Of a stretch of 64,000 nt of DNA, positions 6,201 to 45,263 are shown piece by piece. Both the position numbers and the translations under genes were made by a program. Under the pieces are notes generated by a model that was given only the letters and a program-made list of their open reading frames with translations, was not told the origin of the DNA and did no database searches. Numbering within the stretch: position 1 is the first letter of the stretch; each line of letters opens with the position of its first letter. Source of the DNA: Schizochytrium sp. TIO01 (lineage: Eukaryota > Protista > Bigyra: Labyrinthulomycetes); NCBI GenBank assembly GCA_004764695.1, contig SMSO01000006.1, forward strand, positions 1,069,859 through 1,133,858, given 5' to 3'.

Positions 6201-6990
6201 GATTTGAATTCCGCAACTGGATTCTTCAAGCACAGATAGTAGACACCCAGACTATCAATAGAGCTCCTTATGAGACGCATACATATGATCTTGTTCTTAA
6301 TGGCACAGAAAATATCTGATTACATACTATTCATTTAAAAAAACGCATTGCACACTGTTGGCAAACATCTGTGAACTTTTTTCCAAAGCTGGGCTAACGG
6401 GAAAATGCATAATGTCAAACATCTTAATGAAAAAAATCTAAACAAAAAACGTTTTCTTGTTGTGATCTAGCTACCAGATATAGGTTCCAGATTGTGACTA
6501 GTCAGGTATGATGCTAGTTTTGAGTTAGTATTTTGCGCTCTAAACTTTCAAGATTTACACTTAAACGTAAAACAATTCGAATTTACCATTGTTTCGTCTT
6601 TAGGATATCCTCTATTTATCAACTTAATTGCAAACATCTTTCCAGACTATCTTCAATAAGATGGTTTACTTAGAATGCTTCGTAAGCTTGCTCTCAGTGA
6701 CACTACCAAGTTAAAGTTCAAGCTCTGAATCTCACAATGAGGATCGAACCAGAGTCATCTAGAAGATGAAGTTTCTCTGTAAGGTATGGATCGCAATTCT
6801 ACATGCTGAATACGTGATTTTGTGGGAAGTAAATCTATCCTGCTATGGCAATTGGTGATGTGATATACTTTCACTTGAACTCTTTCGAATCAGAGGCTAA
6901 CTTTATCAACCCTCTGGCTTGGGTAAACATCAAGTCAGATACATCCCTTATGTGAATATTTCATGAGTTAGAATATTCAGCTCAAAGAAC

Positions 6991-7405
6991 TGCTGAGATC
7001 TCCAATCGAAGGAACTAGTGGACAAGACATTGCTAGAGTTCTTGGTGTCCCTTTGTAAAACCCATTAGAAATAAGGTTTGCATTAGAACAAGAATAAGCA
7101 GCCAGATTTATGTGGCTGCTGAAGCCAAGAACTAGAAGTGTAATTACACATCACTGACTCCCAAAGCTTGGTTAGCTTGGATCGATGGTGGAGAAGGTTG
7201 GATAACCTAACCCCATCAATTATCTCTAACCACATTCAAGAATGTCTTAATCTCCCTAACTACTACATGAATCCATCTGTCCTGGAATTCATTCCTCAGG
7301 ACAGCAGTTCGCTAACTCTTAAATCAGCCTTCTTATAGCCTTCATCTAGCCTTCTACCTTCATCTTTACAGTCAACCTCACGCTAATCAATATCACCTCT
7401 CAGCA
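6991..7405 (+). repeat. 5' LTR (415 bp)
   Basis: Starts TGCTGAGA and ends TCTCAGCA (8-bp terminal inverted repeat). No differences from the 3' LTR seen by eye. Confidence 0.97.
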
Positions 7406-7418
7406 GGTTATAGGCCCA
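7406..7418 (+). promoter_or_regulatory. Primer-binding site, half-tRNA(iMet) type (copia/Ty5-like)
   Basis: GGTTATAGGCCCA directly abuts the LTR. It differs at one position from the Drosophila copia-type PBS GGTTATGGGCCCA, which is complementary to the anticodon arm of initiator tRNA-Met. Confidence 0.8.
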
Positions 7419-7478
7419 AAATTACTTCGAGACTAACCAAGATGAACCAAGAACGCTCGTACTGATCAGGCCCAAGCC

Positions 7479-9452
7479 ATGTCGGCCTCAACTAGTAACT
7501 CCACGTCCTCGTCGACCTCGTCTTCCTCGACATCCACCAACCCGGATCAGTTCCAAACTGGACCCGGAGGCTCCTCGGACTCGATGAGAACGGAGAGTCT
7601 TCTCGCCCAACTGGAACATCAAGGGGTAGACTCTCGTAACCCCCTTGCCCAAGCGGAGTCCAGGTCTGCCGACGCTACAGATCCAACTCAAGAAAACTCC
7701 CAACCCGGAACTGACACCGACTCAGCTCCAAATGCACTACATGCACCTGAAAGTTCCAGTGGCCAGGAACCCCTACAGTCCAACCCAGACGGTACTGGAC
7801 AACTGACCGATAGAGCGATGGAGAGCATGTCTCCAGCTGCCCTATCACAACGTTACGGGGACATCACTCAGGTTGTTGATCATGATGGGTGGACTCGAAC
7901 ACTATTCCCACCTCCAAACGTTAAAGAACTGTTCCTGCAAGCACGGGAGGATCACCTGGCGAGACAACGCCACAAAGGACTAGTAACTCATGGTAGCAAC
8001 GCGACAAATCTCTACCAACAGTCGCATCTTCCTACCGTCGACCTAACTGAACTTGGAGGGAACCGTGGGAACCCAAACAACTCAGGGCACACCCCTTATC
8101 TCAGGTCTCAGATTGGCACTCGACCTCCTGGAAAACTCTCCTATGACCTTTTCCGGAATGCCAAGCATAAACTTCCCCTCATGTCGGAGGACATGACGGG
8201 AACCTGGGATCAGTATAGAATCAAACTCTTCAATTTTCTCGGCACCTATGGTCTCACACCCGAGAACATCGCCAACGCCCCCACACCGGAAATCTGGTTT
8301 GACCGAGATCAAAAGCTGTACCAGATCCTGACTCAGGCAGCTGAAAATGCTCAAGATAAACTATATGTTATCACCGCCTCAAACCCACACAAGTCTGGTA
8401 CCCAGGCGTGGTATCGCCTCAACGAACTGTTTGCAGAGTCTAGTGCACGAGGTAAAGTACAAATACTCCAACGACTACAAAAGGTACTTCAGTCTCCACG
8501 TGTCCCTGCAGCTGGTGAGAGTTTTGAAGTATGCAATGGATACTTCTATCAAATCATCAACCTAGGAGAACAACTAGTCGCACTCAACTCTGACCCACTC
8601 GAACTAGTTACACTGCTTGCTCTGATACGCTTCCATGAAGTCACTGGAGGCAAATACGAGGTAGCTATCAATGAGGTACTCAATGAACCTCGACTCCAGA
8701 TCACCAAAGCCGTTCATACTATTCAAAGGGCGGTAGCCAATCATCCACGCCAACCCAAATCAAATGACCAAACTACCGCTGATCTCTGGGCGTTATCGGC
8801 TGTTTCCAAGACCCCTACGAATTCCAAGCAATCCAAGTTTCATCAGCACATTACTTGTTCCAACTGTGGTCGCCGCGGCCACTATGGGCGCGACTGCAGA
8901 GCGTCATCTAACTCTGCTCAACAACAAGCTCATCCTCTACCAAACAAACGTACCAAACGCAACAAACGCAAATCTCCGATTCCTCAAACATACTCGCGTT
9001 TGGATCCGAACCTGGCTTATCTCAGTCACGTCACTCATCCTTCGACAGGCCCAATTTCCTTTATGGCTCTGTCACAGTCTATTCCGTCTGATGTCATTCT
9101 CTTAGACAGCGGCTGTTCCAAAACAATGACCGGTGATCGCAACTTATTCCAATCCTTGGAACAACTTCCTGCACCTCGACGCATCACAGTTGCAAACGGT
9201 GAAACCATGGAAATCACCCAAGTAGGACAAATTCAAGTTAAAATGAAAACCACCAAAGGGAAAACCATCACTGTAACCATTGATGCAGACTATGTTCCCT
9301 CACCAGCACCCACTCTCGTTGCGGTTCGCGACCTCACGGATCGCAACTTTGTGGTCTCATTGGGACCACAACGATGGGAGCTCTCTACTCCAAGGGGAGA
9401 TACCGTCATTCTCGGTGACTATCATGGTTCACCATGCATACGCCAAGAGTGA
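7479..9452 (+). CDS. gag: Retrotransposon Gag + aspartic protease
   Basis: Copia-like gag core (SGTQAWYRLNELF), CCHC zinc knuckle CSNCGRRGHYGRDC, protease ILLDSGCSKTM...ITVANG. Ends in TGA followed by CTAG. Confidence 0.95.
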   Translation: MSASTSNSTSSSTSSSSTSTNPDQFQTGPGGSSDSMRTESLLAQLEHQGVDSRNPLAQAESRSADATDPTQENSQPGTDTDSAPNALHAPESSSGQEPLQSNPDGTGQLTDRAMESMSPAALSQRYGDITQVVDHDGWTRTLFPPPNVKELFLQAREDHLARQRHKGLVTHGSNATNLYQQSHLPTVDLTELGGNRGNPNNSGHTPYLRSQIGTRPPGKLSYDLFRNAKHKLPLMSEDMTGTWDQYRIKLFNFLGTYGLTPENIANAPTPEIWFDRDQKLYQILTQAAENAQDKLYVITASNPHKSGTQAWYRLNELFAESSARGKVQILQRLQKVLQSPRVPAAGESFEVCNGYFYQIINLGEQLVALNSDPLELVTLLALIRFHEVTGGKYEVAINEVLNEPRLQITKAVHTIQRAVANHPRQPKSNDQTTADLWALSAVSKTPTNSKQSKFHQHITCSNCGRRGHYGRDCRASSNSAQQQAHPLPNKRTKRNKRKSPIPQTYSRLDPNLAYLSHVTHPSTGPISFMALSQSIPSDVILLDSGCSKTMTGDRNLFQSLEQLPAPRRITVANGETMEITQVGQIQVKMKTTKGKTITVTIDADYVPSPAPTLVAVRDLTDRNFVVSLGPQRWELSTPRGDTVILGDYHGSPCIRQE

Positions 9453-12400
9453 CTAGCTCCTTCTCATGCATTGTTGGCCGTCTCCTCTAATCGTCAGAGA
9501 GATTGGCTTGCCGCTCACCTGCGCTTAGGCCATGCCAACACCACTCGTATGGCTCGTGCTCTCCAAATCTCTCCGTCCAAAATACAGTTTTCGTGTCCGA
9601 CCTGTGCTTTAGCCAACATCAAAACCAGACCTGTCCCTCAAGGCCCTCACGAGTCCAGGGCAACTGCACCTCGACAGGCTGCTACATTAGACGTAGTTGG
9701 CCCGTTCCAATCATCATTCATACATGGCTACAAGCATGCCCTAGTGATTCGGGATCTGGTTTCTGGCATCGCACAATGTTATGGATTAAAATCTCTCACT
9801 CAAGTCACGACTGCTCTTCACCAATGGAGGGCAGACTGGCATGGTTTTGAAACCAGACGGGCACGACTATATGTTGATGGAGCTTCCTATTTCGTTGGCG
9901 GCACATTCAAAGAAACTTGCACACAATGGGGATGGAGTCTTTCAATTAGTCCCAGCGGGGCTCATGCTCTTCACCCAGCTGAATCCTTGAATGGGGTTCT
10001 CCTTCGGATGGCCAGAGCCATGCTTATGGCGGCTGAACTTCCCTCTCGCTGTTGGTATTTTGCGTATGAATACGCCTGTTACATTCGCAACAGACTTCCA
10101 TCCCAGCGTTCCACACGATCTCCCTTTGAGACTCACTATGGTCGTTCGCCGTCTCTAGACAACCTTCATATTTTTGGTTGTGACGTCGTGTTTAAAGATC
10201 AGGCTCCACCAAACAAGCTCGCTCCACGCGGTTTAAGTGGCAAGTTTCTGGGTGTGGCACGACATCATAACTACTCTACATATCTCATCCTGAACAACCG
10301 CACTACACATCTCATCACTACACGGGATGTACGGTTCTTCGAGAATTCCATTGTTGACAGGGTCATGAACTCCTTCCCACGGTTCTCCAACAACCCAAAC
10401 ACCGTTGAACAAGGTGGTTCTCAACCAATGGGGGAGCATCTACGCTCCGACTCGAGAAAAGACTCTTCTCTTCGGTTCAAATCCGTCTATTTTCCTGCGA
10501 CGCCTGACCTTAACTGGTCGAACTCCTCTTCCTTGTCCTCAATGACCGCTTCCAGCTCAGGTCCAAGTGACCCACTGGTAGCCTCCTCTTCCAATTTAGG
10601 ATCTGCGTCCAGCTCTCACAGGCTGTGTGACAACGATGCCGTCTCCGTGGATTCACCCAGTCGCATACTGTCGACATCTCGACCTGATCACTCGAGCAGG
10701 GTTAGAAATCTACAGGACTTGATACAACCTGATTTCGAGCATGACCTGTCCCAATCTCAAAGACAGGCAAATGCTGGTCAGGGTGAGCCCCGACAGGATG
10801 GGATAGCGTCCCGTGACCTATCGGAGACTCACGATAATCTATCTTTGCCAGAACTCTCCTCTAGAGGAGAAACTTCTCCGGCGAATATGAGCTCATCACA
10901 TACTAGTTCTGATGTAGCTGATTCAACTAACATTGAATCCAACCTAGACTGTATGTCTATTCCTCCGCATGATACTGCGGAGTCTGACTCAAACTCTCCA
11001 CCTTGGTTGAATCCCGATGAGGATCCCAAGGAGTCCGTACCCAATACAGAGGTACGGACCAGGAGTGGACGAATTTCCCGCCGCACCCAATGGATGAATG
11101 CGGACGCGGCTGCCCTGGGGAGGGCCAATACCTATAGCTATCCCTCTCATGTTTTACAGGCATCTTCTTTTGAACATTCCCCGTCCTTTGTCCCGGGGGA
11201 GCAGGTATCACAAGCCTATGATGGGACAAAAGCACTACAGAAACGGACAAGTTATGACCACCGTAACAGTCATTCTGCAATACACCAAATGTATAGTCCA
11301 TCAAAGAAGAAGAAGTCTCAATCCACACTGGTTGGACTTGACCCAAAAGTAAAACACGACCACCAATCAAAACCCATTGTAACGCCTCGAAATTTCAGCG
11401 AGTATCTTCGGTTACCACACCAGGAACGTCAAATATGGACTGAGGCGATAAGAAAAGAATGGTCTAATCTTGAGAGGAGTGGGACCTTCCTCATTGTACC
11501 TAAAAAGGAGGCAAAAGGCGCTATCATCAATGCCGCATGGATTTTCACATACAAAACACTTCAGCAAACCGCCAAGGCCAGGCTAGTTGCTCAAGGGACT
11601 AATGAACCCCTAACATCTCCGTGGGATGTCTTCGCCCCAACCACGGACAGATTATCGCTGAGAACAGCCATTATTGTTGCTCTCACTAAGAACTGGTCAT
11701 TCGCGATATTGGATGTATCGGCTGCATTCTTACAAGCAGAAATCGATCATGAAAAGGAACCCATCTACATCCGACCACCAAGAGGTGTACAAGTACCAGA
11801 AGGATGCATCTTCAAACTTGCTAGATCTCTCTATGGACTGAGAACAAGTCCTCGAAGGTGGGCTGAACACCTAGCCCAAACCCTAGAAGGTTGTGGACTT
11901 CGGAAAAGCAAGTTCGACCCAAGTTGCTTTATTGGACCCGAAGCCATTGTCATCAGTCATGTGGACGACCTATTAATCACAGAAACTCCAAATTCAGTGA
12001 AGAGAACAATCAACACTCTAAAAGCAAAGTATGACGTCAAGTGTGAGATAAACCCAGCCACTGCCACCTACTTAGGTAACAAACATGAGTTCAACCTGGA
12101 TGCAAAAACATGCAAGATTTCCCAGGCAGTCCATATAGAAAAGACCTTAAAGGATCACGGGATGGACAAAGCTAACTCATGTAAAACACCAATGGAGGCT
12201 AAGTGCTATCTTCCTGACCATGACAAAGATGAACAACACCCAGACTACCGAACAATTGTGGGAAAGCTCATGTACCTCAGCTGCACACGAATTGACCTTG
12301 GATACCCACTTCACCAACTATCTAGACACGGACACAAGAATGGACCAGTACACATGGACGCATGTAAGAGGACCCTCAGATATCTTAGAGGAACCACAAA

Positions 12401-12995
12401 TGATGGTCTTGTGCTAAAAGGTCAGAACTCGGTGAATGATATCAAGATTAATGTATTTGCTGATGCAAGCTTTGGTCAGATCAACGACCCACACATGAAA
12501 TCGGTAAGTGGATACGTAGTAAGGCTCAATGATAGTGCTGTGTTATGGAAATCAACCAAACAGACTATTACAGCTCAAAGCACCTTTGAAGCAGAACTCA
12601 TTAGCATATACGAAGCTAGTCGGGCTGCGGAAGGTGTCCGACATTTACTAGAAGAATTCGGGATCAACATCAGTTGCATTAATATTTACACCGACTCTCA
12701 AGCAGTAGTAAATGTAGTGGAGAGGGGCTGTTGGCAATCACGAAACAAGCACCTATCGTTGAAGTACCTTGATCTGTCAATCAAGCTGAACGCAGGTGAC
12801 ATTCGCATCACACATATCCCCGGCACACTGAACCCTTCCGATTGTCTCACCAAGTCACTGCCTCGCATCGATCATGTACGACATAGTCACACACTACTGA
12901 ATGCACAGACTGTGGACTTGAGGGGAGTGCTGAGATCTCCAATCGAAGGAACTAGTGGACAAGACATTGCTAGAGTTCTTGGTGTCCCTTTGTAA
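9453..12995 (+). CDS. pol: Retrotransposon Pol (integrase, reverse transcriptase, RNase H), in frame with gag-PR behind a single UGA
   Basis: Integrase: HLRLGH...CPTC, LDVVGP, VDGASYF, AESLN. RT: KARLVAQG, LDVSAAFLQA, SLYGLRTSPRRW, HVDD. RNase H: FADASF, STFEAEL, TDSQA, NPSDCLTK. Same frame as 7479, and 9453-9470 is six sense codons. Confidence 0.95.
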   Translation, partial: LAPSHALLAVSSNRQRDWLAAHLRLGHANTTRMARALQISPSKIQFSCPTCALANIKTRPVPQGPHESRATAPRQAATLDVVGPFQSSFIHGYKHALVIRDLVSGIAQCYGLKSLTQVTTALHQWRADWHGFETRRARLYVDGASYFVGGTFKETCTQWGWSLSISPSGAHALHPAESLNGVLLRMARAMLMAAELPSRCWYFAYEYACYIRNRLPSQRSTRSPFETHYGRSPSLDNLHIFGCDVVFKDQAPPNKLAPRGLSGKFLGVARHHNYSTYLILNNRTTHLITTRDVRFFENSIVDRVMNSFPRFSNNPNTVEQGGSQPMGEHLRSDSRKDSSLRFKSVYFPATPDLNWSNSSSLSSMTASSSGPSDPLVASSSNLGSASSSHRLCDNDAVSVDSPSRILSTSRPDHSSRVRNLQDLIQPDFEHDLSQSQRQANAGQGEPRQDGIASRDLSETHDNLSLPELSSRGETSPANMSSSHTSSDVADSTNIESNLDCMSIPPHDTAESDSNSPPWLNPDEDPKESVPNTEVRTRSGRISRRTQWMNADAAALGRANTYSYPSHVLQASSFEHSPSFVPGEQVSQAYDGTKALQKRTSYDHRNSHSAIHQMYSPSKKKKSQSTLVGLDPKVKHDHQSKPIVTPRNFSEYLRLPHQERQIWTEAIRKEWSNLERSGTFLIVPKKEAKGAIINAAWIFTYKTLQQTAKARLVAQGTNEPLTSPWDVFAPTTDRLSLRTAIIVALTKNWSFAILDVSAAFLQAEIDHEKEPIYIRPPRGVQVPEGCIFKLARSLYGLRTSPRRWAEHLAQTLEGCGLRKSKFDPSCFIGPEAIVISHVDDLLITETPNSVKRTINTLKAKYDVKCEINPATATYLGNKHEFNLDAKTCKISQAVHIEKTLKDHGMDKANSCKTPMEAKCYLPDHDKDEQHPDYRTIVGKLMYLSCTRIDLGYPLHQLSRHGHKNGPVHMDACKRTLRYLRGTTNDGLVLKGQNSVNDIKINVFADASFGQINDPHMKSVSGYVVRLNDSAVLWKSTKQTITAQSTFEAELISIYEASRAAEGVRHLLEEFGINISCINIYTDSQAVVNVVERGCWQSRNKHLSLKYLDLSIKLNAGDIRITHIPGTLNPSDCLTKSLPRIDHVRHSHTLLNAQTVDLRGVLRSPIEGTSGQDIARVLGVPL
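12920..12927 (+). promoter_or_regulatory. Polypurine tract
   Basis: GAGGGGAG immediately before the TG of the 3' LTR. Confidence 0.8.
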
Positions 12996-13342
12996 AACCC
13001 ATTAGAAATAAGGTTTGCATTAGAACAAGAATAAGCAGCCAGATTTATGTGGCTGCTGAAGCCAAGAACTAGAAGTGTAATTACACATCACTGACTCCCA
13101 AAGCTTGGTTAGCTTGGATCGATGGTGGAGAAGGTTGGATAACCTAACCCCATCAATTATCTCTAACCACATTCAAGAATGTCTTAATCTCCCTAACTAC
13201 TACATGAATCCATCTGTCCTGGAATTCATTCCTCAGGACAGCAGTTCGCTAACTCTTAAATCAGCCTTCTTATAGCCTTCATCTAGCCTTCTACCTTCAT
13301 CTTTACAGTCAACCTCACGCTAATCAATATCACCTCTCAGCA
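12928..13342 (+). repeat. 3' LTR (415 bp)
   Basis: Direct repeat of 6991-7405, followed by TSD AGAAC. Confidence 0.97.
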
Positions 13343-15738
13343 AGAACGTAGAAAAAGTATTCTATCCATAATCTAATGATGAAATATAGTGGGCAAAATT
13401 AATGATTCTATAAGGAACTGTATCTAAGTCATGAAATCCTGTATATAGTGTATGAGGTATAGTCGCAATCAACCAACAAGAAATGTGCAACACTTGGCAA
13501 ACCTAGACCTGATCAAGCATGGATCAAACACAGGACAAGCCCAGGACAAGAATTGAGATCACCATGACTACAGACAATACACATTTCTCTAATATGCACC
13601 AGGCGACTTAAATGAGGCTTCGCTAGGCAAACTCTGGACGAAAGCCACTCAAATCAGGATGTGTCTGAAGCTTAAGAAATCCATGAGCTCCCAACAAAAT
13701 CAGCCTTATTCAAACCAGGAATGCCAAGTAAGTTGCAACAATAAGAAGCCACAATACATTAATTCGTAGAATCCGCAACATGAACCGATTAGCTCTGGAA
13801 GATAACAATATTCAATACTTCCAAGGTAAATACTGGAATCTAAATCTGGTTTAGAGATTGATCGTGAATATGAGGGCAAGAGGATTGAAAAAGGCTTGAT
13901 AACTTTGGCTTCAAGAGTTAGCGGTGTGCTGTCCTTGAGGTTCGGCTCCAAGGCAGGCAGATTTAGGTCATTATTTGTAGACCAAAACAAACTTGACGTG
14001 TACTAGAGACGATTGAAGAGGTTAGGTTAACTTGTCTCTTCAAACATCAATCCTGATTTACTCATATTTGATTCTAGCTAATGTGAATGCACATTTTAGT
14101 TCTCGTCTATTTTGCGTTCATATCCACGCATCTGGTTGTCTCGTTCTGTTCCTGAACTGCCTCTTTCTCTTTCTCCTGAGTTCGGCATCCTTGTCAGACT
14201 ACCTCTGCACGCTTCACAGCACAAGCTACTCTGCATTTGAACCCCAGTAATTTATACATGTTGCTTCGATTAGAGATCCCAGCAATAACTATCACAGATC
14301 CGCGATCATGGAGGACAGGACAAAGTGATTTGCCCGCGCTTGGTTTCTCTTTCTTTGTCAAAATTACTTTTTTGGTCTTGGAGGAGCCCCCAACATTATA
14401 AAAATACGAAAGAAAATGACTGCAGAAACCTGGCTTGCTCAACAGCTTTACGCAAACATGAGACTCGACCCAAGTAGAGAACATAAATAGCAGATTAGCC
14501 TACCAATTCGGGCCTGAACTGCTATCTCTCTACCCCTTATACACAACAAATACACTCGGCGTGCAAAACATTATTTCCCGGCTATTTTTATCCTACTGCA
14601 CTCCTTGTCAAACTGAGTAAATTAGTGGTTCTATACACAATAAACTTGTTGGAGTATCTTCAGTATCTTCAGTCTCAAGGAATCCTGATCCAGCAGGTAA
14701 GGAAGACTATGTAACAATCTCTTTCTGAGAAGTTGTATGTATGCATTCATAACTTGTTAGAGACCCTTCAACAGCTATACGTTAACAATCTAGCATTCGT
14801 CCTGATATTCGAGGTACTATGATTCAATTATGAATCCTCGCTCATAGTGTTGAGCTGATCTGCGCCAACATGCAAATATTCCCAAATCATGCCTAAATTG
14901 TAAACAGTCATACTGTCTTACTCTTGCAAATGTTGAACGAATCGCCTCAACTCTGGTCAAGGCTATGACACAACACTTGCTTCAACCCTAACACGAAAAT
15001 ATTTAAGGCCACTGAGTTTATTCTCGATCCATATACTTTCCACCTAACAGATTGCAATCTTCTTCTTCTGTGAGTTTCCTCTACAAGCCTGAATTATCTG
15101 TGCAGAAAGGACCATTTTCTCGAAGTATCCTACCTGTACTAGCTCTCTATTCTATTACTATGAGCGCAGCACTAAAACACAAAGCAAACTCTTGTTGTAT
15201 CCACTACAGCTTTCATCGTCGTGCGACAGCTGCTGCTTGGAGACTGGCTCAAGAATCCATTATCAAAGTTTGCGTGGCCAGTCTATATAAATCTCATAGT
15301 TTTGACTCGCCAAGAACCCATCTTAGTAAGCAACATACTCCGTTTTCCCAATCCTCCAAAGCTATCTATATTTCTGATGCCACGCGACCTGAGAAGGTAT
15401 AACCTACCTACCTGCAATTGCAGAGCACCTCCTTGCCGGATTTCCCTCTGCCATCACCTCGTTTGCCGGATATCCGCATTCCCATACAAACCCCTCGAGT
15501 TGCCATTATTTCAACTTATACTGTCAATCACAGCGTTCCTTCCCGTTCCTAACTCTTGCTAAGCTGAGCCGCGCCCGCAGGTCTCTGTCTTTCTAGAACG
15601 GTGTGACTTGTCTACGTTAGTGTTGACAATAGTCCATCGTCGAGAAAACCCATCTCTTTCTCGACTTTCTCGCGCTGTCTCTTCTTATGTAGAGCTACCC
15701 ATCTCTTAGTGCCTCCCTATTGCCTTTTCAACATTTGC

Positions 15739-42484: not shown

Positions 42485-44019
42485 TTTAGTGCAACAATTC
42501 TGTACTGATCTATACATGCGAACAATTCTATTGCACCTCCTGAGAGTGCTAACCCTTCGTTTTCTTTTAAAGTACTCGTACTTCTCTCTCTCCTTCACTC
42601 TGTGAATAATTCTCTTCTACTTCTTCGAGACCAATCCTCATTTCTCAATTAATCGTTTTCTGAATTGATGAAGACTCTAGTACCTACACCATGCGCTGCT
42701 ATTATACTCAAGCCCAATATAAACTTGCATACTCATTTAATTGTTGCTGATTACGTTCAGGATGAACTAAGTAGTCTCCGTATTTAAATATAACTTGCAT
42801 GCTGTTTACTTTTTGCAATTCCTAAAGTTATAAAAGTCTGATAAGGGTGACCGCTTGGGTTCGCTCGTGATTACCTGGGGTCTTTCTAGGCTGCATCGAT
42901 CACTTGTTTTGCTGTTTGAAAAGAATAAGGAATTTGCAAAGAGGGACATATTCATTAACCTCAAGACACCACTTAAGTGTCGTAATATTAATAAAAAAAG
43001 AATTAGACTACGATAGATCTATTGCTTAGCGGAAATTATTAAGATTATAAAACGCATTCGATCTTGAAAACCTTCATTTTGCCGAATGTAGAACCACTGG
43101 CTATATCTTTCAATTTTAATTTTTGAAAAAAAACGTCCTCAAATCGATGTTGACTTCTGGTACCCGGTGAAGGTCGAGGTTACCAGCCCTTTGAACTATT
43201 ACAGAATGTTTTTTTGTCTAATTTAAGTTTATAGCTTCCATGGATGGTCGCATGTTGCGATTTCCACTCATGAATATCGCAAGTTAGTAATCACATTATC
43301 TTTTCAGAATACACATCTCTTCTCCTAATGCCGCAAGATGGAAAAAACTGCAGCGATTCGGGCAGGAGCGTGCATGATTGCACATTATCCCATTTCTAAA
43401 TTCACATTTCGAGCATTTTCCATTTACCAAGTTCAACGCTGTCAACCATCACATAAGCAAAACGATAAATCTTCACATACTTGACCATCGCTGGACATGC
43501 TATCCAGATGCCACTTCAATTCCTGCTCTAACTTACCTTTAGTATTGACTTCCATTTATTTTTTAAAGTAGCATCAGTTAAATTTTTTACCAAGACGCAA
43601 GAACGTTGGTGACTTCTATTGTTTGTATTATGTAATCGCTAGCTTGAAATGACGAAAAACTTGGTTCACAGGAGAAAGAAAGGGAAACAAATCAACTAAT
43701 AAATAGACTACTATCCAAACGAACAAGACAGCAGCAAGCAAACCACGATTGATCGGCGAGTCAGCGAGTTCCTACGCCCAGGTAGACCTTAGTCTCATCT
43801 CAGTGCCTTCTCTGTTCTTAGCGGGAGGGGGGTCACGCAGGTGTTTGCGAACTGGACGGCGGCGGATTCAGTCGAGCGGCACCGAGAGAAATTCGTTCCT
43901 TGCTTGATCTCTTGCAGATATCTGATATCTGACACACCAGGAAGCACGGAAAGAGAACTCAAGGTACCGCACGAGAGGTGTTTACGAAAGTACCGAAGAA
44001 CTTTGAACCCCTGAAGAAA

Positions 44020-44373
44020 ATGAGTAGCAGCAGTAGCAGTAGCAGCAACAATGCCGCTTCTGGAGCAGCAGGAGGCGTCGCGACGAAGCGAACTTATGTC
44101 AAATTGATCAGTGCAGAGGGTCATGAATTCTTTTTGGACAAGGATATTGCGATGATCGCCAAGACCATTGCTGCAATGCTCACAGGCAACTTCTCAGAGT
44201 CCAAGGGCGAGATCAGATTTCCGGAGATTTCAACAAAGGTTTTGGAGAAAGTTGTGCAGTATTTGCACTACAGACAAAAGCATACCAATTCCACGCAGCC
44301 TATTCCGGAGTTTCACATCGACCCGGCAATTGTTGCTGATCTCCTCATGGCAGCCAACTTTCTCAATTGCTAG
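44020..44373 (+). CDS. ELOC: Elongin C
   Basis: YVKLISAEGHEF, TIAAML, FSESKGEIRFPEI, VLEKVVQYL, IPEFHI, LLMAANFLNC. ATG at 44020. Confidence 0.96.
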   Translation: MSSSSSSSSNNAASGAAGGVATKRTYVKLISAEGHEFFLDKDIAMIAKTIAAMLTGNFSESKGEIRFPEISTKVLEKVVQYLHYRQKHTNSTQPIPEFHIDPAIVADLLMAANFLNC

Positions 44374-45263
44374 ATCTCTCTTCAATCATATACACGATAC
44401 CTTTCTCAGTTGTTTAACATTCTCGTCGTATCTCTGCTACTGCCAAAAAGCACAGGTGCGATTGTTTACCTATCTTCACTACATAAATCGCGCAGCGAAA
44501 CTATACTTCAAACCGATAGTCCATATACCTTTACCAGTAATACTTTGCAAAATCATCTCTTTGTCTCTTTTGTTTTTGCTCTCTTGTTTATAAAGATCAA
44601 TGTGATGTGTTGGATCAAAGGGTGCACCGGTCACTATATACATTTTATTTTATTTTTTGCAGAAATCCAAATTAGTCTATACAAAAACCCAATGCGTTGC
44701 ATCCATTATTAGAAACCTGTCCTTGCGGCATCTGTTTCCACAGAGGAAGTTCAGCAACATCGCTCGGTTATCCTCTCTTGGAAAAGCTCTACGCATCAGA
44801 ACTAAGTACATTTAATGTCCTCTCAGCCACCAAACCAGGAGAAACAATCATACGTAGACATACTTGAGACATTGAAACAAGGATTCGGAGAGGTAATTCA
44901 ACGCTCCGGATGAAAATCTAGCAACGTAAAGTAGAAGGCAGAAGGATGAGCAAGCACAACCACTTTGTGAAATGACTATTTGTCTTGCGGAAAAAAGAGA
45001 AGTATGAATCAAATGGTCTGTTAAGTAAAATTAGTTGTGACTTTTGTGCTGCACTTTGCATCGTCAAGTCGAGCTCATTACGAGATTCATCAAGAGCTTC
45101 GATTGGCATGGGATATTGAAATTGAAAGAAAAAGTTATGAATCAATGAATTTGTTATTTTTATAAATGCAAACTTTGTAAAGGAGTAGTGTTCAAAATTC
45201 AAGGGATACTACTGATCGGAATTTGGTGAAGTCAAGTGAGATGAGGCGGAATAAATCTTAATC

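Follow-up and report, generated by a model that had tools for sequence, protein, structure and literature searches.

A candidate UGA-CUAG readthrough site downstream of the protease in a Ty1/copia retrotransposon of Schizochytrium

Retroelements require a large excess of Gag over Pol, and the means by which they obtain it are a classic problem. The prevailing view for copia-type elements is that they use one open reading frame (ORF) together with splicing, protein degradation or frameshifting. Drosophila copia, BARE1 and EVD splice the transcript of a single ORF to obtain an mRNA for gag alone, Ty1 relies on frameshifting, and Ty5 relies on protein degradation (PMC5580714). In-frame stop codons are also on record: the sequences flanking the stop of Tca2 (pCal), a Ty1/copia element of Candida albicans, drove no readthrough in yeast (PMC2194720), and transposition of the fission yeast element Tj1 reportedly depends on its stop (10.1101/2022.12.06.519325). 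Among cellular genes, the heptamer UGA-CUAG, the best-characterized leaky context, is common to four efficiently read-through mammalian genes and was confirmed as the motif by mutagenesis in mammalian cells, where UGA-CUA alone yields about 1.5% readthrough (PMC4132726). Here we describe a Ty1/copia element that carries this heptamer between its protease and its integrase. The element occupies positions 6991-13342 on the + strand of a 64,000-nucleotide (nt) stretch of the Schizochytrium sp. TIO01 genome (assembly GCA_004764695.1, contig SMSO01000006.1, positions 1,069,859 to 1,133,858), which is referred to below as the window and supplies the coordinates used throughout.

ORF1 encodes Gag and an aspartic protease (PR) according to its reading and Pfam matches; its coding part spans 7479-9449 (7479-9452 with the stop) and specifies 657 amino acids (aa) without an internal stop. 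ORF2 (9453-12995; 1180 aa, likewise without an internal stop) continues in the frame of ORF1 and encodes integrase (IN), reverse transcriptase (RT) and RNase H (RH). The two are divided by an in-frame TGA at 9450-9452, the sole stop in a frame of 1838 codons. The sequence at this point is CAA GAG TGA CTA GCT, in which CTAG (9453-9456) directly follows the TGA. The stop lies 33 codons past the protease barrel and 22 codons ahead of the first histidine of the integrase HHCC zinc finger (9516-9605; H-x4-H ... C-x2-C), whose histidine pair falls within 9516-9533 and whose C-x2-C occupies 9594-9605. The corresponding residues (H11, H16, C37 and C40 in alignment A2) are invariant across the copia families of this genome. 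The first in-frame ATG past the stop, at 9549-9551, is situated between the histidine pair and the C-x2-C, such that initiation there would produce a broken integrase. A preliminary description of the locus had reported this arrangement from the letters of the window, including the uninterrupted frame on either side of the stop, its place at the PR/IN boundary, the position of the ATG and the leaky reputation of UGA-CUAG, and all of these points hold.

The CTAG context at the stop is more than chance: of the 524 codons in the frame that a single mutation could turn into a stop, CTAG follows only 4 (~1%). By a rough estimate, a random nonsense mutation would fall within the PR-IN linker (roughly 55 codons) in ~3% of cases.

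In a DNA search over the whole 64-Mb, 37-contig genome, the PR/IN region was found preserved in only four copies: the window copy, copy C33 (99% identical), copy C6 (about 96% identical) and copy C32 (about 93% identical and truncated at its 5' end). In 4 of 4, which are 92-99% identical overall, the stop is embedded in the identical 17-mer CAAGAGTGACTAGCTCC, which contains TGA-CTAG, and a synonymous C/T difference among the copies occurs 6 nt upstream. None of the four has a sense codon at this position, and the search returned no stop-free member of the family; the private nonsense mutation that the preliminary description had named as fatal to its proposal is thereby refuted, as is an assembly error. 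The three complete copies have their own 5-bp target-site duplications (AGAAC, GTTAC and ATTAG), and flanks differ among the copies, indicating that they are separate integrations rather than segmental duplicates. A near-match of 21 nt on contig C34, with TGT in place of TGA (G000:C34:1918512-1918532, L064), was rejected as a family member because its flanks are unrelated; it agrees at 20 of 21 positions, which is probably due to chance, yet such a match is rarer than expected for a 64-Mb genome.

The history of the stop can be traced through the long terminal repeats (LTRs) of the family. At least 40 LTR matches were scored among 309 first-look candidates, and 33 additional LTRs (L065-L097) were retrieved, most of them solo LTRs with perfect 5-bp duplications. 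The solo LTRs of the family are 92-99% identical. In the LTR tree, the four copies with an internal region are distributed over three sublineages of one 24-row clade, where they are interleaved with solo LTRs. By parsimony, the TGA was present in the common ancestor of these three sublineages, and stop-bearing elements integrated many times thereafter. The dozens of solo LTRs, set against four copies with an internal region, indicate that LTR-LTR recombination removes elements efficiently.

Selection on the frame behind the stop was gauged codon by codon in the four copies. The ratio of nonsynonymous to synonymous divergence (dN/dS, or omega) in ORF2 is 0.21 between the two youngest copies, window and C33, and 0.28-0.38 for the other pairs. 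The LTRs of window and C33 are identical or nearly so, and the differences between these two copies therefore arose before insertion. When changes were assigned to the branches of the four-copy tree, the internal branch, which separates window and C33 from C6 and C32 and has the stop at both of its ends, received 24 synonymous and 17 nonsynonymous changes in ORF2 and 12 synonymous and 3 nonsynonymous changes in ORF1. Under a conservative neutral expectation derived from the family's own substitution spectrum, 31% of non-nonsense changes would be synonymous; against this spectrum-aware expectation, the ORF2 omega on the internal branch is about 0.31 (p = 2e-4). The IN-RT-RH region behind the stop is thus under purifying selection in stop-bearing lineages. 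Had pol died with the origin of the stop and been copied only in trans ever since, its omega should be near 1. The observed value of ~0.3 makes the stop compatible with a working element, of which, to judge from the sequence comparisons, it is probably a part.

The closest sister family in this genome, with 57% identity in the integrase, carries one uninterrupted ORF (1652 aa), and its LTRs are near-identical. Its linker between PR and IN is similar in length and can be aligned with that of the stop-bearing family (...GSP...ALAV...DWL.. in the sister family versus ...GSP..*..ALLAV...DWL..). The linker codons past the stop (9453-9515; LAPSHALLAVSSNRQRDWLAA) are alignable with translated linker sequence of the sister family, and a single-ORF sister with a homologous linker implies that the stop is a derived feature of the stop-bearing family that arose inside translated sequence.

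These features are consistent with programmed ribosomal readthrough at UGA-CUAG, a reading to which we assign a probability of roughly 60%. Under this reading, the UGA would have been acquired in the PR-IN linker after the split from the single-ORF sister family and then kept. Gag-PR, released by normal termination, would predominate; in the minority of cases in which a near-cognate tRNA decodes the UGA, aided by the 3' CUAG, the ribosome would continue in frame to produce a Gag-PR-IN-RT-RH fusion, which would be packaged by way of its Gag part and cut by the protease. We infer that the stop would in this way set the ratio of structural to enzymatic protein and, as in alpharetroviruses, keep the protease in the abundant fraction. 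The readthrough proposal of the preliminary description is strengthened by the inheritance of the stop in a leaky context and by purifying selection on pol, but its novelty for the Pseudoviridae was overstated.

Several observations weigh against readthrough. No sequencing run recorded as RNA was found to contain the element, and the contigs that four sequencing runs contribute over 7406-12927 are DNA-like, entering flanking DNA and LTR junctions. The gag-UGA-pol junction of Tca2 is equally suggestive and gave no readthrough in a yeast reporter (PMC2194720). Conservation at the stop is limited in its reach: the preliminary description had called for a conserved TGA-CTAG amid diverging flanks, and whereas the former is found in every copy, the latter is not, since the 40 nt around the stop are invariant in all four and the context is not demonstrably more conserved than its neighbors. 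These four copies represent only three lineages, their divergence is at most about 8%, and two of them are degraded. Protein and metagenome searches returned no close relatives of the family outside this genome, and hence no deep test of conservation: in a protein search with ORF2, no match exceeded 44% identity, and this over a quarter of the query, and two metagenome scans gave either nothing or only copia integrases at 23-26% identity. Nor does any 3' structure stand out. The folding energy of the 121 nt that start at the stop is -31 kcal/mol (z = -1.03 against shuffles), and 31 of 200 shuffles fold equally well, in a test that did not model pseudoknots as such; the spacer and stable pseudoknot or stem-loop that make up a signal of the murine leukemia virus (MLV) type were not found. 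For a site of the CUAG type, which does not require such a structure, this lack is neutral.

Other explanations dispense with readthrough. The TGA could be an inherited defect, in which case the family would be nonautonomous for IN-RT-RH and mobilized in trans by a lost stop-free master or by the sister family, and the CTAG would be coincidental. New insertions of LTR elements are frequently dead on arrival (PMC9744471). In this family, copies C6 (identical LTRs but many indels and stops) and C33 (a frameshift and a deletion in gag) suggest that defective RNAs are mobilized in trans, and only four copies have kept the PR/IN region. Against such a history, a dead pol mobilized in trans should drift at an omega of about 1 rather than at the values of about 0.3 on the internal branch and 0.21 in the youngest pair; the genome is without a stop-free copy to serve as master, the sister family is merely 57% identical in the integrase, and a CTAG context would be met by chance in about 1% of cases. 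An inherited defect is, on these grounds, unlikely. Pol might instead be made without decoding the stop, from an internal promoter or a subgenomic RNA, through initiation at a non-AUG codon (e.g., TTG 9471) or by a noncanonical bypass of the Tca2 type. Tca2 indeed has a weak promoter at its junction and a UGA that is not read through in the yeast reporter (PMC2194720), and TTG codons are present past the stop of the element at 9471 and 9474. Free IN-RT-RH, however, would be without a Gag part for entry into particles, and an AUG start at 9549 would give an integrase without the two histidines of its finger. The Gag part normally brings Pol into particles, as established for retroviruses and Ty1, and reinitiation past an ORF of 657 codons is inefficient. 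Separate expression would also leave unexplained both the CTAG context and the strict continuity of frame with ORF1 in the window copy, and we consider it distinctly improbable.

Removal of the stop by a small intron is very improbable. Excision from GT at 9449-9450 to AG at 9498-9499 would take out 51 nt in frame and leave an mRNA for the fusion protein. Splicing of this kind is reported for plant Ogre elements. In the element, the required dinucleotides are present, the 51-nt deletion would spare both the frame and the HHCC finger, and a CTAAT occurs at 9487-9491. The comparison with introns of the host is unfavorable: four introns in two proteasome-subunit genes (G000:C32:1719900-1721500, L062; G000:C35:2500800-2502500, L063) begin with the donor GTAAGT or GTACGT, use CTAAC or CTGAC as branch site, have an AG-free tail that runs for 36-73 nt, end in a CAG acceptor and measure about 160-275 nt, whereas the candidate has the donor GTGACT, a CTAAT only 8 nt from the AG and a total of 51 nt. 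Judged by donor, branch site, AG-free tail and length, it therefore does not resemble an Ogre-like intron built on host signals, and the splice that the preliminary description had allowed for is unlikely because the candidate fits none of the signals of these four introns. Furthermore, splicing to the first AG (9496-9497) would excise 49 nt and shift the frame, the region 9000-9800 is devoid of motifs resembling a donor or a branch site, and the codons that would be deleted have translated homologs in the sister family. In the four DNA-like runs, neither a joint at the stop nor a copy lacking the 51 nt was seen. A search for the intron consensus in the window itself was uninformative. Introns were encountered in only 2 of ~15 proteasome-subunit genes, and their branch site is yeast-like. 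Decoding of the UGA as selenocysteine can practically be dismissed: the stop is in a poorly conserved linker and not at a catalytic residue, and neither a selenocysteine insertion sequence (SECIS) nor any other Rfam family matched at E <= 1 on either strand of 6900-13450. Two further candidates were rejected. Hypermutation, whether by editing or resembling repeat-induced point mutation (RIP), does not account for the TGA, as the substitution spectra of the copies are broad, and a reassigned genetic code is at odds with other copia families of the genome that are open for up to 1734 aa under the standard code.

The remaining anatomy is that of a recently inserted Ty1/copia (Pseudoviridae) LTR retrotransposon, complete on the + strand. 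Direct LTRs of 415 bp (6991-7405 and 12928-13342) are 100% identical to each other over their full length, begin and end with TG...CA and have the terminal inverted repeat TGCTGAGA/TCTCAGCA. The same five bases, AGAAC, form the target-site duplication at both ends of the element (6986-6990 and 13343-13347). The domain order is Gag-PR-IN-RT-RH, with an RT of the copia type (Pfam RVT_2). Within ORF1, Pfam places a CCHC knuckle (zf-CCHC) at 8856-8897 (residues 459-474) and the retroviral-type protease beta-barrel (PF22936, Pol_BBD) at about 9099-9350 (residues 541-624), and the DSG motif of the protease is at 9105-9113. Within ORF2, Pfam identifies an SH3-like integrase domain (SH3_retrovirus) at about 10137-10349, the RT (RVT_2, E = 6.5e-30) at about 11523-12197, with HVDD at 11958-11969, and RNase H (RNase_H) at about 12447-12746. 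The TAA that ends ORF2 (12993-12995) is inside the 3' LTR, such that pol extends 68 nt into this repeat (12928-12995), and the single ORF of the sister family (L108) likewise enters its LTR. A polypurine-tract-like sequence, GGACTTGAGGGGAG, whose role is suggested by its sequence, adjoins the 3' LTR at 12914-12927. A primer-binding-site-like sequence, GGTTATAGGCCCAAA, adjoins the 5' LTR at 7406-7420. Copies C33 (L059) and C6 (L060) and the sister family (L108) have GGTTATGGGCCCAAG at this position, from which the window copy differs by two G>A changes despite its identical LTRs. We take GGTTATGGGCCCAAG to be complementary to the anticodon arm of the initiator tRNA-Met, presumably for half-tRNA priming as in Drosophila copia.

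Gag has an N-terminal extension (7479-8050) of ~190 residues that is Ser/Thr-rich and of low complexity and that the sister family is without. Copy C33 has a 98-nt deletion within this extension, and indels are found there in other strains as well. Copy C6 (G000:C6:2097171-2103120, L060) combines 100% identical LTRs and its own target duplication with at least 13 indels and several stops in its coding region; such a copy suggests either the recent trans-mobilization of a defective RNA (dead on arrival) or LTR homogenization. An LTR at G000:C13:4255777-4256212 (L095) is followed by the primer-binding-site-like sequence GGTTATGGACCC, which marks it as the 5' LTR of a further copy; the searches did not find a PR/IN region there, probably because this copy is truncated. 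Three pairs of solo LTRs (L072/L073, L089/L090 and L093/L096), some of them near contig ends, have identical flanks, which points to segmental duplications. In sequencing run X2, labeled as organism B, a contig at window position 8170 contains the exact 5' truncation junction of copy C32. This insertion is therefore common to different strain or species labels, and the runs derive from very close relatives of the organism of the window. Elsewhere in the window, what had been taken for a split Skp1-like gene at 43978-44593 is actually an unsplit ORF: positions 43978-44373 encode a small elongin-C-like protein with a Skp1_POZ domain and the ending ...LLMAANFLNC, which has no relation to the stop.

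If readthrough takes place, this family would bring a new layout to the known set, a copia element whose leaky stop follows the protease and which makes this enzyme in excess, and would extend the UGA-CUAG signal to stramenopiles. It would also provide a natural and recent case of a recoding site derived from a single-ORF ancestor, since the sister family is still unbroken. We consider the odds about even that a stramenopile copia lineage evolved its postprotease UGA-CUAG readthrough site in this manner, reaching an alpharetrovirus-like stoichiometry without frameshifting and giving the first indication that the CUAG signal functions in stramenopiles. Annotation pipelines would call the stop-bearing copies broken; the selection test says otherwise.

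Among described cases of recoding, OPRL1, OPRK1, MAPK10 and AQP4 have the same 7-nt signal as the element (PMC4132726). These are host genes that gain C-terminal extensions of tens of residues, whereas in the element the extension would be an 1180-residue part of a polyprotein. To our knowledge, the UGA-CUAG signal has been tested so far in animals and fungi and not in stramenopiles. In Tca2, as in the element, gag and pol occupy one frame, and a single UGA has to be bypassed on full-length RNA; the pol proteins of Tca2 are made from this RNA (PMC2194720). The stop of Tca2 precedes the protease, and behind it lie a purine-rich tract and a putative pseudoknot, as in MLV (PMC2194720), whereas that of the element comes after the protease in a UGA-CUAG context without significant 3' structure. 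The fission yeast elements Tj1, Tosmo1-3 and Tcry1 have an in-frame TGA within a conserved GAA-TGA-CT(A/G), which resembles the GAG-TGA-CTA of the element (10.1101/2022.12.06.519325). Unlike the element, those of the Tj1 type are Ty3/gypsy (Metaviridae) and have the stop between Gag and PR-RT-IN, with the protease on the rare side.

In alpharetroviruses, such as the avian sarcoma-leukosis viruses (ASLV), the protease is contained in the abundant Gag product, and RT-IN requires recoding by -1 frameshifting. ASLV and the element are alike in that the protease accompanies Gag in the abundant product and recoding is needed only for the enzymes behind it; they differ in that ASLV uses a -1 frameshift and the order RT-IN, whereas readthrough is proposed for the element and its order is IN-RT, and no common descent is implied. 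In MLV, suppression of an in-frame stop sets the ratio of Gag to Gag-Pol, as proposed for the element, according to the passages of PMC5580714 and PMC2194720 that cite this case. MLV has a UAG with an 8-nt spacer and a pseudoknot, situated before the protease, and neither feature is seen in the element. The soybean retroelement SIRE1 is, we presume, of the copia type. The portion of PMC2194720 that deals with SIRE1 cites it as using stop-codon suppression, at a stop between pol and an envelope-like ORF, whereas the stop of the element is inside gag-pol. A literature search of limited scope found no copia element described as having its stop between PR and IN. The preliminary description took such a mechanism to be undescribed in the Pseudoviridae, which is too broad in view of the stops bypassed in Tca2 and, by the same portion of PMC2194720, suppressed in SIRE1, but the position after the protease is without a precedent in the literature searched. 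Stop-codon bypass itself is thus not new for the Pseudoviridae; what sets this element apart is the position of its stop after the protease and a short CUAG context in place of an MLV-like pseudoknot.

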